This document shows, piece by piece, positions 53,760 through 64,000 of a DNA stretch of 64,000 nucleotides (position 1 is the first letter of the stretch; each line of letters opens with the position of its first letter). A model generated the notes under the pieces. It saw only the letters and a list, made by a program, of their open reading frames with translations. It was not told the DNA's origin and did no database searches. Where the stretch lies: positions 186,001 to 250,000 of IMG/VR virus record IMGVR_UViG_3300035180_001778. One strand, 5' to 3'. The position numbers and the translations under genes were made by a program.

Positions 53760-53787
53760 CCTACATGAGCACCATGAACGGGATCAA
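53760..53787 (-). promoter_or_regulatory. Phage promoter TTGATC-N16-TGTAGG
   Basis: Exact motif and spacing. Confidence 0.7.
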
Positions 53788-54254
53788 CCGAGGGGAAGCG
53801 AGGCCACCCGAAGACAGGCCGTCGTGAGCTTCCGCACCCCTTCGAGAAGAGTCTCGGGGGTGAACGGCATGGGTCCGAGGTGAAGGAGCCCCAAGGGGTC
53901 GATCTCAACCCCAAATTCTCGAAGGACCACCATGGTGCCGGAAGGAAATGCCCAGGTCAAGCCATTGATGTTCCGGCGGTTGACCGCTGCTTGATTCGTC
54001 TCGGGCTCGACGAGGTGCAACAGGCCGTCCTCAACCCTTGCTTCGAGGTCGAGCCAGGCGCCTTGGGGGTACTTGCTGTGGGTGCGGATCGTCACCGGCC
54101 CGCCAGGTACGGCAGCCTCAAGCAGGCGGATTTGGGGGTGTTGGCAGATGACTGCTCTCTCTTTGCTGGAGAGAAAGCCTACCGGACCGACGCGAAGATC
54201 GTTGGTCCGGTGCGTGGGGAGGAAGAAGGAACGGAGAGCGTGTCCAAATCCCAT
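53784..54254 (-). CDS. Hypothetical protein
   Basis: GGTGTA-N9-ATG upstream. Confidence 0.55.
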   Translation of the reverse strand: MGFGHALRSFFLPTHRTNDLRVGPVGFLSSKERAVICQHPQIRLLEAAVPGGPVTIRTHSKYPQGAWLDLEARVEDGLLHLVEPETNQAAVNRRNINGLTWAFPSGTMVVLREFGVEIDPLGLLHLGPMPFTPETLLEGVRKLTTACLRVASLPLG

Positions 54255-57444: not shown

Positions 57445-58026
57445 TCAAGGGTTTGTAGACGGAATCTCGATGTAGCCCCGGAAGGTAAGAGAGATCCTCT
57501 CACCACACTGCACGGGGCTCTTGGGGATCCTGTGCATGTGCGTGTTCTGCATCCCGGGGGCCATGAGGGCGAGGGACCCGTGCTGGAGCTTCAGCCGCTC
57601 GGGATCGAGCTGAACCGGAAGCTCAGGGCGAGCTTCCATGATCTGCTTGAACCAAATCTCGCGCTCGAATACAAGCGACACGATCCCGATGGGACGGGCG
57701 TCGTCCATCTCGGGCGAGTCATCGGCGTGCCACCCAAGCTGGTCCTTCTGATCCAGGTAGCGGTTGAGGAAGCAGACCTCGAAGGTCGCCCCCGTGAGCG
57801 CTTCGAGGTCCTTCCTGATCTCCCGGATGACGGGATGGTACGGACGAGGCTCGTACAGCCGGCGTCCCTTGCCCCGTCCGTAGACGTAGGGGGTCGGGGT
57901 GTCGTTGCAGTAGTACTCGCACCTGGGAGCGTCACCACGGCGCTCCCAGTCCAGATCATTCCGAAGAGCCGCGAACGCCTTGTCAGGGTCCGAGACGAAC
58001 TTGTAGGTGACGGGGGCCTTTTCCAT
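57445..58026 (-). CDS. AlkB-family 2OG-Fe(II) dioxygenase
   Basis: LNRY, GWHAD, H and RISLTFR motifs. Confidence 0.88.
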   Translation of the reverse strand: MEKAPVTYKFVSDPDKAFAALRNDLDWERRGDAPRCEYYCNDTPTPYVYGRGKGRRLYEPRPYHPVIREIRKDLEALTGATFEVCFLNRYLDQKDQLGWHADDSPEMDDARPIGIVSLVFEREIWFKQIMEARPELPVQLDPERLKLQHGSLALMAPGMQNTHMHRIPKSPVQCGERISLTFRGYIEIPSTNP

Positions 58027-58044
58027 GGGGTCTAGATACACCGA

Positions 58045-58224
58045 AGCGCTCCCCTTTGGGAGGGAGCTTGGACTCGGCGTTTGGGGGTCGTGGCGAGGTG
58101 AAGCGCGAGATCCCCATCCTATGGTCGGGCGGAGAATCCTGTTCGAGGCCTTCCGCGCGACACCGACCGGGGTTCCTGGTTGAGGACTCCCGGCTGTCCA
58201 AGCTCCCTTCCAGAAGGGAGCGCT
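58045..58224 (-). ncRNA. Structured ncRNA A: 180-nt rod with 29-nt closing stem (6S-like shape)
   Basis: 58045-58073 pairs with 58196-58224 (26/29 Watson-Crick); nested inner helices; own promoter. Confidence 0.6.
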
Positions 58225-58232
58225 GTGATCAT

Positions 58233-58260
58233 CCTACAGGTTGATGCCGCTGGGGATCAA
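58233..58260 (-). promoter_or_regulatory. Phage promoter TTGATC-N16-TGTAGG (ncRNA A)
   Basis: Exact motif, ending a few nt before the 5' end of the closing stem. Confidence 0.7.
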
Positions 58261-58264
58261 CCCG

Positions 58265-58545
58265 TTCGTTCGTATTCTGAGAAGAGTCCCCGAACAACCC
58301 CTTGGGACCAGCCTCAAGGCTGTTCGGGACACCGGGATCTCACCCCCAATGCTCTCTTGCCACGTTTTTCCGTCAGAACACCTGGTCGCGTCCTTGCGGC
58401 ACTCTTCGGAAGTCAGCTCGGTTTACGCCGAGCTGCTCCTCTCCGTGGGGACTGCCTTGTATGGCTCCCATCCCCATTCGAGAGCATTTCATGCTGACCG
58501 TGGGGTTTCCACAGTCGAGAGGACTCTTCTCAGAATACGAACGAA
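58265..58545 (-). ncRNA. Structured ncRNA B: multi-hairpin domain closed by a perfect 25-bp stem
   Basis: 58265-58289 is the exact reverse complement of 58521-58545; several hairpins with GNRA-like loops inside. Confidence 0.6.
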
Positions 58546-58547
58546 AC

Positions 58548-58626
58548 AACCAAGGGCGGATTCGAACCGCCTACCAATGGCGACCCTTTTGGAGAGTGCC
58601 CACCGCACCATGCGATGTCCTTGGTT
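58548..58626 (-). ncRNA. Atypical tRNA-like RNA, identity unclear
   Basis: Acceptor AACCAAG/CUUGGUU, perfect T-arm GGCGG-UUCGAAU-CCGCC, long D-stem, irregular anticodon arm. Confidence 0.55.
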
Positions 58627-58632
58627 AAAAAA

Positions 58633-58695
58633 CTGGGCGTCCTATCACTTAGACGACTCTCGTGAGAGAGGAAGGTGTCGAACCTTCATACCCAA
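58633..58695 (-). ncRNA. Circularly permuted tRNA-like module (T-arm, capped acceptor, D-arm)
   Basis: UUGGG-UAU-GAAGG UUCGACA CCUUC-CUCUC UCAC GAGAG-UC-GUCU AAGUGAUA GGAC-G-CCCAG. Confidence 0.6.
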
Positions 58696-58829
58696 CGGGG
58701 TGCCCGATACCAACGGACAGATGGGACTCGAACCCACCTCGACCCCTACTCTAAGAAGTCCGAACACGTTGGAAATTCACAGGTCTGCTTTCCACCGCAG
58801 AGCAAGCTTTAATCGTGTTCAGTCTTCGG

Positions 58830-58914
58830 TCGCAAGCCAGGGAGTCGAACCCCGCTTCACATCGATCACCTTGGAAGGCTGGCCGCCCGGCCACTTTTCG
58901 TCGATGCCCTGCGA
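58830..58914 (-). ncRNA. tRNA-like RNA with acceptor-like stem, T-arm and branched arm, lacking a D-arm
   Basis: UCGCAGG/CUUGCGA closing stem and CGGGG-UUCGACU-CCCUG arm; begins right after a promoter motif. Confidence 0.5.
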
Positions 58915-58921
58915 TGAGGGT

Positions 58922-58949
58922 CCTACAACGGGAGGACCTGCCCGATCAA
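58922..58949 (-). promoter_or_regulatory. Phage promoter TTGATC-N16-TGTAGG
   Basis: Exact motif and spacing. Confidence 0.7.
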
Positions 58950-58961
58950 CCTCAAAGACTT

Positions 58962-59348
58962 CTGAATAGTCGATCTGTGTGGCCGCTCAGGTGCAATCAC
59001 GGTAGTCATGTACCGGAGGATTGCCGATCCCGCCGCCTGGGTCTTCGGTCCGGGGGTGCCAGTTCGCCCTCTACGCTGGCACCCTTGTCCTTCCACACAG
59101 AATCAGAAACCTCAAGTCAGACCTACGTGGTCTTGACGTTGGCCGTTCCGGTGAGTCATGTCACCGAGGCTGCTCCCGCGTTGGCGTTGGGGTCTTGGGT
59201 CAGTGTTGGCGTCGAGTATCTTACCCACCTTGGAGGCATGGGTACCTTCTGAGCGCGCTTCTGACTTGTCCCTGCCACGCAGGCCTGACTTGAGGCGTCG
59301 TACTATTCAGTTGTCAATGACCGAGTCGGCTTTCGTTCTCCGTCTCGT
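58962..59348 (-). ncRNA. Structured ncRNA C (about 390 nt)
   Basis: 21-bp helix 59110-59130/59275-59295 with two G-U pairs on the minus strand; closing helix 58962-58970/59302-59310; twin CAUGAC-loop hairpins. Confidence 0.6.
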
Positions 59349-59354
59349 AGTAGT

Positions 59355-59382
59355 TCTACAGTCTGAGTCGTTCCCTGATCAA
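59355..59382 (-). promoter_or_regulatory. Phage promoter TTGATC-N16-TGTAGA (ncRNA C)
   Basis: Exact motif and spacing. Confidence 0.7.
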
Positions 59383-59402
59383 CCTCGGGGTGTTTTTTCT
59401 TG

Positions 59403-59551
59403 AGGTTCGGGTTGAGCAGAGCACAACCTTCGTGCTGACTCGAACAGCCACACCCAACCTTGGGATACCGGACTCGAACCGGAATACAGAGGCTTATGCT
59501 GCCCCTGTGAGATACCCTTCTCTCCAGTTGTGCTCTGCTCAACCCGAACCT
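59403..59551 (-). ncRNA. Structured ncRNA D: perfect 25-bp stem enclosing tRNA-like arms
   Basis: 59403-59427 is the exact reverse complement of 59527-59551; two UUCGAGU T-loops inside. Confidence 0.6.
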
Positions 59552-59644: not shown

Positions 59645-59762
59645 TGGGGGAGTGTCCAGGAATCGAACCTGGCTAGCTTTTCAGCAGGTCATTGAGAGAA
59701 GGAGCATGTGGCCACATGCTCAAACCTCATAAAAACCCTCGTCTTCCAAGACGAACACTCCC
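59645..59762 (-). ncRNA. tRNA-His-like RNA with greatly extended anticodon arm
   Basis: G-1:C73-type acceptor with CCA, perfect T-arm, 118 nt long. Confidence 0.55.
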
Positions 59763-60186: not shown

Positions 60187-60214
60187 TCTACAGGCCGACC
60201 CCCAAGACGATCAA
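60187..60214 (-). promoter_or_regulatory. Phage promoter TTGATC-N16-TGTAGA at the head of the RNA island
   Basis: Exact motif and spacing. Confidence 0.7.
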
Positions 60215-60230
60215 CCGAATCGGATCTTTT

Positions 60231-61156
60231 CTACTGCGTCTCGGAAATGACGCGGAGCGTATGGTAGAACTGCGGTGCGTCATTCTCGTTCGGGATCCCG
60301 GCGGAGTTGCCGTCGTTGACCTCGATCACCCACCACTTCCCCTCGACATCCTGTGCAATGTCCAGGGCAGCGAAGGGGGTGCCCAGACGAGCCCCCACAG
60401 CTTGGAGCCAGGAAGCCGGGGATGCGCGTCGATGCTCTCGATGTAGGTAGCCCCCTCCGTCCAGTACCGATAGGTCGCGAAGGGCTGCCCCCTCAAGAAG
60501 AAGGTGCGGAACTCCTGAACCAGGGGCATCCGGCTCTTCGTGTGAATGCCCACTTGCTTGAGGTTCAAGAACTCGCGGAAGACCAAGCCTCCGTAGAAGT
60601 CGTCACCCTGCAACCGGATGAAGTTCGAAGCGACTCGGGTCACCTCCGTGGCGTCGCTCGCATCACGGATGAAGCAGGCGTCGAACCACTCGTGCTTCCG
60701 GCTCTTGAGGAAGTCCTTCACCATCACCGGCTTCGGGCCGAAGTTCATCTCCACAAGTGCGGCGACCTGCTCCATGGTCGGAGGCTTCTTCCACGAGATG
60801 ATCGAAGACCTCGGCGTCAGCTCCTTCAGATCGGCGTACCACCGAGGGAGGTCGTGCGACCACATGTAGTTCTCGGGGGTCGTGAGAAGACCCGGGACCA
60901 GCTCGACGAGCTGCTCGAACTCTTGGGGCTTGAGAATACACCCCCGGTAGAGAGCCGGACCCTTGATGCCGCTCCAGTGCTGTCGGTTGAGTGCCTCGTT
61001 TTCGGGAGTCACTCGGAAGGGCTCCCCGAAGACCCCGCCGCTCAAGAACGCGATCTGAAATCCAACCGAACGCGCAACTTCGATCTCGCCCACCCAGGAC
61101 GGGTCAGGAGTTCGGATCGTTCCGGGTTGTGCGGGGAATACCAGAGTGCAGTCCAT
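60231..61156 (-). pseudogene. ATP-grasp (R2K-like) protein, frameshifted near 60420
   Basis: VKDFLKSRKHEW and EFRTFF are in frame; the conserved tail LDIAQ...WWVIEVNDG is in the -1 frame and ends at TAG 60231-60233. Confidence 0.75.
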
Positions 61157-63577: not shown

Positions 63578-63654
63578 TGGTGCCCGCCGGGGGATTCGAA
63601 CCCCCAACCTTCCGTTTTTGAGGCGGACGCCGCTGCCAGTTGGGCTAGACGGGC
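63578..63654 (-). tRNA. tRNA-Leu(CAA) with short variable loop
   Basis: Acceptor GCCCGUC/GGCGGGC, A73, CCA, loop CUCAAAA, 5-nt variable region. Confidence 0.75.
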
Positions 63655-63708
63655 ATAATACAGGAAGGCCCTGGTTGCGATCAACCAAGGCCTTCCAATT
63701 CGAGAATT

Positions 63709-64000
63709 TGGAGCTGCCGGGAATCGAACCCGGGTCCGCAAAGCTTCCGTTCCGCTTTCGTTTACGTGCGTAGCCGCCATATCCCTGGCGGCTGGGTTCG
63801 CGGATTTGGCCGCGAACTATCTCGTCTGCTTGTCTCGAAGGGGTAGCCGCCGAGCACGCTTCCCCTTCCAGCCCTGTGGGTTGACACCGGAAATCCAGCT
63901 ACTAGGACGATCTTGCTGGCCGATGGTCACTACGCAGCCATCTGCATGGGGACGAGAGCGTTGTCGTTCGCAGGTATACGTCTCGATTGATTACGGCGGG
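63709..64000 (-). ncRNA. ssrA: tmRNA (5' end outside the window); tag ANDNALVPMQMAA
   Basis: 3' end GCGGACCCGGGUUCGAUUCCCGGCAGCUCCA; tag ORF 63971-63930 ends in AA followed by stop. Confidence 0.9.

Follow-up and report, generated by a model that had tools for sequence, protein, structure and literature searches.

The window analysed here, a 64,000-nt stretch of DNA, comprises bases 186001–250000 of a 350-kb IMG/VR virus record from an uncultured jumbo phage; the record is 73% complete. Phage-type genes in the window encode a GroEL-like chaperonin, a ribonucleotide reductase, an exonuclease V-like protein and HNH endonucleases. No close cultured relative of the phage was found, and a blastn search with positions 57900–58700 against 50,697 phage records returned no match. 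DNA of this phage recurs in sediment and microbial-mat metagenomes. Four DNA runs from such samples contained near-identical strains, with zero variation within the element of interest, I1.

Nearly all genes of the region are carried on the minus strand. The same holds for a 23-kb block (242.6–265.7 kb of the genome) made up of about 40 tRNA genes plus one for a tmRNA, and I1 sits at the low-coordinate end of this block. Within the tRNA island, a gene-free stretch of 2.3 kb is flanked by genes for an R2K-type ATP-grasp protein and an AlkB-like protein. It holds four long-stem RNAs (I1–I4), with tRNA-like genes interspersed among them. For comparison, we fetched syntenic contigs with the AlkB-like protein as the handle; these are denoted by L and a number. 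The features of the stretch were as follows.

57445–58026, minus strand: gene for an AlkB-like 2OG-Fe(II) oxygenase (PHROG 21963 at 7.5e-63, and Pfam PF13532), the downstream neighbour of I1 and outside it
58037–58042, minus strand: GGTGTA of the AlkB-like gene, exactly 10 nt before the ATG at 58026, the modal class II arrangement
58045–58224, minus strand: I1, structured RNA with a fold z of −6.2, a 29-bp closing stem (90%) and covariance-model homologues in L009, L013 and L115
58233–58261, minus strand: class I promoter-like motif of I1 (GTTGATC at 58261–58255, 16 nt, TGTAGG at 58238–58233), ending 8 nt before helix P1
58265–58545, minus strand: I2, 281 nt, fold z of −9.2, perfect 25-bp closing stem
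58922–58950, 59355–59383, 60187–60215 and 63657–63685, minus strand: other class I copies, which precede other RNA units
59110–59295: I4, closing stem of 21 bp (90%)
59403–59551, minus strand: I3, perfect 25-bp closing stem; its counterpart at L009:4989–5146 has a perfect 32-bp stem
60326–61156: R2K-type ATP-grasp gene, bordering the gene-free 2.3-kb stretch

Long inverted repeats were rare in this phage. Exact repeats of at least 14 nt with a gap of 30–600 nt numbered only seven in the whole 350-kb genome, and two of the seven, together with the imperfect repeats of I1 and I4, all lay less than 1.5 kb from the I1 site. The arm sequences of I1–I4 were mutually unrelated, and none was repeated elsewhere in the genome.

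The first-pass annotation of I1 had described a highly structured RNA of about 180 nt with paired termini. This description was borne out, and the strings it quoted proved to be those of the minus-strand RNA. The arms at 58045–58073 and 58196–58224 form a 29-nt inverted repeat that is 90% complementary. Folding energies of the 180-nt element were −99.4 kcal/mol for the minus strand (z = −6.2) and −114.2 kcal/mol for the plus strand (z = −7.6), and none of 200 shuffles folded as well as I1. The minimum-free-energy fold was branched, with the closing helix drawn around a multi-branch core. Read 5′ to 3′, the order was P1, H1, the 4-bp helix P3 (which carries an invariant GGUG/CGCC), H2, an AUAGG joint, H3, and then the returning strands of P3 and P1. 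The parts of I1 were placed as follows.

58196–58224, minus strand: P1 5′ arm, 29 nt; family-wide conservation covers only 58196–58206 (11 bp), with both-side changes in 6 of the 11 core pairs
58166–58194, minus strand: hairpin H1, GCCGGG..UCCU-loop-AGGA..CCCGGU; a C-G pair becomes U-A in L013 and L115
58124–58161, minus strand: hairpin H2; both-side changes in 6 of 9 stem pairs, apex identical in 4 of 4 members
58118–58122, minus strand: AUAGG joint between H2 and H3, single-stranded and invariant in the family alignment
58079–58119, minus strand: hairpin H3, of which the window phage and L009 have a long form and L013 and L115 a short one
58045–58073, minus strand: P1 3′ arm, 29 nt, with its conserved core at 58063–58073

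In hairpin H2, a 9–10 bp stem led through an AGG/AUUC internal loop to a 3-bp stem capped by a loop, and the invariant apical motif of H2 comprised AAGGCCUC (58152–58145) and AGGAUUCU (58140–58133). It had also been noted earlier that each arm of the closing stem could fold on itself, so that the RNA might switch conformation. Each P1 arm is indeed a near-palindrome by itself (GCUCCCUUCUGGAAGGGAGC; GCUCCCUCCCAAAGGGGAGC). However, a conformer with both arms self-folded reached −82 kcal/mol against −100 kcal/mol, that is, it was 18 kcal/mol less stable, so a spontaneous switch is unlikely.

A counterpart of I1 was found at L009:5818–5997, with 95% identity. This element is more constrained than its surroundings, since the AlkB coding sequence of the same contig was 86% identical to that of the window phage and the upstream spacer 87.5% identical. 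A covariance model of the core (R1) matched L013:5119–5243 (E = 1e-6) and L115:4106–4231 (E = 3e-8), and a model built from four sequences (R2) matched the same two contigs at 1e-21 and 6e-20, respectively. Contigs L099 and L104 carried the same sequence as L013; L007 and L015 were the window phage at 100% identity and were left out of the covariation analysis. The resulting alignment had four members (the window and the metagenomic relatives L009, L013 and L115) from three independent lineages. Beyond these, R1 detected no further family member in 80 GroEL-anchored loci, and R1 and R2 recovered only the window's own copy from 34 and 30 whole related jumbo-phage records. A scan of viral, metagenome and genome collections with the motif AAGGCCTC...AGGATTCT...ATAGG gave only copies from the window phage or L013, along with hits to which the models assigned no score. 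Two weak matches, at L010:3331–3419 (E = 0.024) and in G009 (E = 0.23), were dismissed as chance. I1 was single-copy, and the family was confined to a small subclade.

In the family alignment, 97% of cells at paired positions held standard pairs and 16 pairs had changes on both sides, values that are somewhat favourable to the branched fold because the alignment was model-guided and fitted to the model. None of 500 shuffles reached the alignment values, and sliding the partners by 1–3 columns yielded counts of 0–2. When L013 and L115 were each folded alone, the topology of the window RNA was recovered, and these independent folds thus point in the same direction as the model-fitted alignment. 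One exception to compensation was observed in H2 of L009, where a cluster of four substitutions opened two pairs. Indels between members were not multiples of three (one was a 19-nt difference in H3), and I1 is therefore non-coding. The members in L013 and L115 were only about 125 nt long with an 11-bp P1, compared with the 180-nt form and its 29-bp duplex in the window.

The pairs also told the strands apart. G-U or U-G pairs occurred at eleven pair positions on the minus strand, and an A.C or C.A mismatch occurred in no cell, indicating that the minus strand is the functional one. For example, after a C-to-U change in the P1 3′ arm of L009 the minus strand still pairs, as G-U, whereas the plus strand would have a C.A mismatch. 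This observation bears on whether the repeats act as DNA, that is, as a cruciform, as a protein-binding inverted repeat or as a miniature transposon with terminal inverted repeats. The perfect inverted repeats of I2 and I3 (25/25, and 32/32 for I3 in L009) would suit such an element, as would the presence or absence of I2 and I4 between close relatives. But many pairs of I1 are G-U and would be mismatches in DNA, its interior helices covary, and the arms of I1–I4 have neither sequence in common nor repeats elsewhere in the genome. We therefore regard a DNA-level element as highly improbable.

We also compared I1 against known RNA families. At the gathering score and at E ≤ 10, Rfam models matched only tRNAs, tmRNA and chance hairpins in the window, in the element alone and in its relatives. 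On the strength of these comparisons and the covariation described above, I1 is a conserved, branched, minus-strand RNA of a new and narrowly distributed family absent from Rfam. Two resemblances were considered and set aside. The likeness of GGGAAGUCCAG in L013 to conserved region I of RNase P was rejected, as the motifs come in a different order and the RNase P models gave no score; for 5S rRNA, the Rfam 5S models gave no score and the topology differed by eye. The 73%-complete record had no match to the reverse transcriptase family PF00078, a gene of which would be expected next to the inverted-repeat-flanked msr/msd RNA of a retron.

The reading offered first for this element was that of a 6S-like RNA, a rod whose central bubble would mimic an open promoter and sequester the host RNA polymerase holoenzyme. 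A length of about 180 nt, a long closing helix and independent promotion are what one would expect of such an RNA. The rod itself was not the favoured fold: forcing its four helices gave −87.8 kcal/mol, 11.6 kcal/mol worse than the branched structure at −99.4 kcal/mol. The three rod-specific helices showed zero compensatory changes and had pairs lost or gapped in L013, and covariation was seen only in the two helices that the rod has in common with the branched fold. The asymmetric central bubble was likewise not conserved in the homologues, an outcome that the first-pass annotation had itself named as evidence against its proposal. The Rfam 6S model gave no match at the gathering score or at E ≤ 10 in 8 kb of sequence, in the 206-nt element alone or in the relatives, and the length of the L013 and L115 members, only about 125 nt with 11-bp closing stems, also speaks against this reading. 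The joint AUAGG has only TAGG in common with the hexamer TGTAGG, which is too little for a match. Pfam searches for sigma-70 region 2 and RNA polymerase Rpb1 domain 2 found nothing in the 73%-complete record, although divergent proteins could escape such searches; if this absence is real, the phage would depend on the host polymerase, and a blanket sequestration of that enzyme would be less attractive. Of the sequence and fold features expected of a 6S-like polymerase trap, those tested were all missing from I1, and we consider this reading extremely unlikely. The two folds make different predictions, as the rod model would leave CUCAACCAG and its opposite strand reactive.

Counts of frequent words revealed a bipartite motif upstream of many genes in the phage. 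This class I motif, GTTGATC-N16-TGTAnn, occurred in 89 copies in the genome compared with 0–1 in shuffles, and its spacer was exactly 16 nt in 87 of them. In 66 of the 89 copies the hexamer was followed after 6–10 nt (6 nt in 45 cases) by an ATG opening an ORF of at least 40 aa. A second motif (class II), GGTGTA, occurred in 210 copies without a −35-like partner. An ATG lay exactly 10 nt downstream of 51 of these, and 49 of the 51 opened an ORF of at least 60 aa; GGTGTA was also present upstream of the gene at 53784–54254. Both classes were conserved in L009, L010, L013 and L115. Their architecture, orientation and position suggest that class I is probably, and class II may be, a promoter class giving rise to leaderless or very short-leader mRNAs.

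The class I copy ahead of I1 was kept in L009 as GTTGATC-N16-TGTAGA. The suggestion that I1 is independently promoted is thus supported by the presence of the phage's commonest upstream motif. A scan for consensus sigma-70 promoters did not list the I1 site, so support for an I1 promoter rests on the phage's own motif. Only 2 nt separate the mature 5′ end of tRNA-Leu(CAA), at 63654 on the minus strand, from the class I hexamer ahead of it; either transcripts would start inside the hexamer or immediately beyond it, or this tRNA would be made almost without a leader. The primary transcript of I1 probably starts at 58226–58234, 2–10 nt before P1. A tRNA-SeC(tca) gene at genome 302161–302233 was preceded by a class I motif. 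For an RNA unit at 58635–58943 on the minus strand (L009:5147–5364, L010:5408–5549, L013:4301–4406), five phages have the conserved sequence (AUCGCAGGGCAUCG...) beginning exactly 6 nt beyond a class I hexamer. This unit contained several T-arm-like hairpins that were left uncalled by tRNA finders.

The gene boundary downstream of I1 raises the question of a role in cis, either as a 5′ leader or riboswitch of AlkB or as a terminator or insulator stem that ends one unit before the next promoter. The spacing of the elements favours such a role: P1 ends 3 nt before the promoter-like motif of AlkB, I2 ends 3 nt before the motif of I1, and I3 ends 19 nt before the next motif. In addition, a search 3′ of P1 found no intrinsic terminator, and no separate terminator was visible. 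Against this, AlkB has its own canonical class II motif at the modal distance, and I1 is therefore not needed as a leader. Homologue N-termini placed the AlkB start at the ATG at 58026. A ribosome-binding site or leader hidden in P1 was rejected on the same grounds, the start not being the GTG at 58041. In L013 and L115, moreover, a tRNA-like gene and then a 209-aa ORF intervene between the I1 homologue and AlkB. Finally, the interior of I1 is also conserved and covarying, which a terminator would not require. A cis-acting function is, in our judgement, doubtful.

The arrangement in L013 and L115 differed from that in the window in other respects. Their homologues had no class I motif of their own, the promoter upstream of them being that of a tRNA-like unit (L013:4279). 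The tRNA-like gene began 5 nt after P1, had a CCA end and scored 25 bits against the tRNA model.

The neighbouring RNAs of the gene-free stretch included several oddities. The core of I3 was tRNA-like: it had a 7-nt loop resembling an anticodon loop with CAU, and two T-arm hairpins (GUUCGAGUC). When the window phage was compared with L009, the I3 stem showed many compensatory changes of the Watson-Crick type. I2 directly abutted a tRNA-like gene; at the corresponding place in L009 (5519–5780), homologous flanks enclosed a stretch that was unstructured and in which a 71-aa ORF is called. I4 was absent from L009. Judged from this pattern, I2 and I4 behave as exchangeable cassettes. An odd tRNA of about 82 nt (58546–58627, minus strand) had a CCA (Trp) anticodon and a score of the long-variable-arm type that was below the tRNA threshold; in its counterpart at L013:4610–4691, ARAGORN read a four-base anticodon, tcca. 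A 115-nt tRNA-like RNA (59648–59762, minus strand), kept in L009, combined a 7–8 bp acceptor-like stem, a D-arm and a canonical T-arm (CCAGGUUCGAUUCCUGG) with a greatly extended anticodon-arm hairpin. The phage-encoded tmRNA (63708–64000 of the window and beyond, minus strand) had the tag ANDNALVPMQMAA, and it was kept in L009, L010 and L013 with varying tags.

Such surroundings invite the idea that I1 is a mimic from the tRNA world or a Y-RNA-like module, which would act on defence nucleases that target tRNAs, or on enzymes of tRNA repair or modification (such as the AlkB-like protein, an Rv2179c-like exoribonuclease or the R2K ATP-grasp), as their decoy or cofactor. I1 is surrounded by tRNAs and by tRNA-like RNAs of aberrant form, its sibling I3 has the loop and T-arms described above, neighbouring genes act on nucleic acids, and AlkB lay within about 1 kb of I1 in all four contigs. 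This linkage may, however, be mere inherited gene order. I1 itself had no T-loop, no anticodon-like loop and no score with the tRNA model, and thus does not contain the tRNA-like module of Y RNAs of the YrlA type. In addition, neither TROVE/Ro60 (PF05731) nor RtcB was matched in the 350-kb, 73%-complete record. We consider a tRNA-mimic role unlikely.

The reading we prefer is that I1 encodes a small RNA which is stable and acts in trans, a member of a new family located in the tRNA/tmRNA island of a jumbo-phage clade; to this reading we assign a probability of roughly 55% on the basis of conservation, covariation and gene boundaries. In the window phage and L009, transcription from the element's own class I promoter would begin a few nucleotides ahead of P1 (2–10 nt), and locking of the 5′ and 3′ ends within P1 would shield the RNA from exonucleases. 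In the window lineage the RNA would have gained a promoter of its own, and P1 would have been lengthened by 18 bp, extra pairs that are seen in that lineage only. The extended P1 would be a duplex of at least two helical turns, and cutting by host RNase III is predicted; RNase III itself had no Pfam match in the 73%-complete record. Such a cut would trim read-through transcripts and leave a P1 of about 11 bp, as in L013 and L115. It would also define the 3′ end, because no terminator follows P1. In L013 and L115, the RNA would be made inside a tRNA-like precursor, and with the tRNA-like gene only 5 nt after P1, RNase P would set the 3′ side. We would guess that a protein or RNA from the machinery of translation or tRNA maintenance binds to a surface formed by the invariant apical loop of H2 and the AUAGG joint, with I1 acting as a scaffold or decoy.

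One variation on the stable small RNA would treat I1–I4 together as a battery of duplex RNAs of 21–29 bp (32 bp for I3 in L009), acting as decoys or competitive substrates for a host dsRNA-binding protein, whether RNase III or an RNA-sensing anti-phage defence, with the branched cores adding specific protein-binding surfaces. Its nearest parallel would be adenovirus VA RNA. We think this collective role very unlikely.

To our knowledge, a structure has been defined for very few small RNAs of phages, and the two classical RNAs of the T4 tRNA region have gone for decades without a function known to us. I1 adds a covariation-supported family outside Rfam with a clear gene boundary, set by a promoter motif upstream and by the motif of the following gene downstream. 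Its two natural versions, the 125-nt core and the 180-nt form with the extended duplex, provide a ready comparison for studies of function and processing. The reach of the family is narrow, at three lineages. With two classes of promoter-like motif mapped, the limits of other non-coding RNAs of this uncultured jumbo phage can be drawn as well.

Four known systems offer points of comparison with I1. In 6S RNA (RF00013), the similar size, paired ends and independent gene are matched by I1; I1 differs in being branched rather than a rod, in having no conserved central bubble and no covariance-model match, and in having relatives of only about 125 nt. Adenovirus VA RNA I is a viral, independently transcribed RNA of about 160 nt, with a terminal duplex and a branched central domain, that acts as a decoy for a host dsRNA-binding protein. 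It is a eukaryotic RNA made by Pol III and is not homologous to I1, for which a decoy role would be pure conjecture. Bacterial and phage Y RNAs of the YrlA type, which are bound by Ro60/Rsr, have their ends paired in a long stem that closes a structured module, and occur together with tRNA-related functions, in phages too. I1 resembles them in that its 5′ and 3′ ends pair in a long stem around a structured module; it differs from them in having no Ro60/TROVE gene found in the record, no tRNA-like T or D arms and no Rfam match.

The nearest parallel in setting is provided by RNAs C and D of phage T4 (the species 1 and 2 stable RNAs), which are made from the T4 tRNA region and whose biological role is still unknown (PMC3014915). 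Like them, I1 is a small non-tRNA RNA in a phage tRNA cluster, and its G-U pairs fix it on the tRNA strand; this places it in the same functional grouping, which is not a homology family. The likeness extends to L013 and L115, where the element is in one unit with tRNA-like genes. I1 is set apart from the T4 RNAs by its own fold, its own promoter-like motif and its 29-bp terminal duplex, and it comes from an unrelated phage clade and host.
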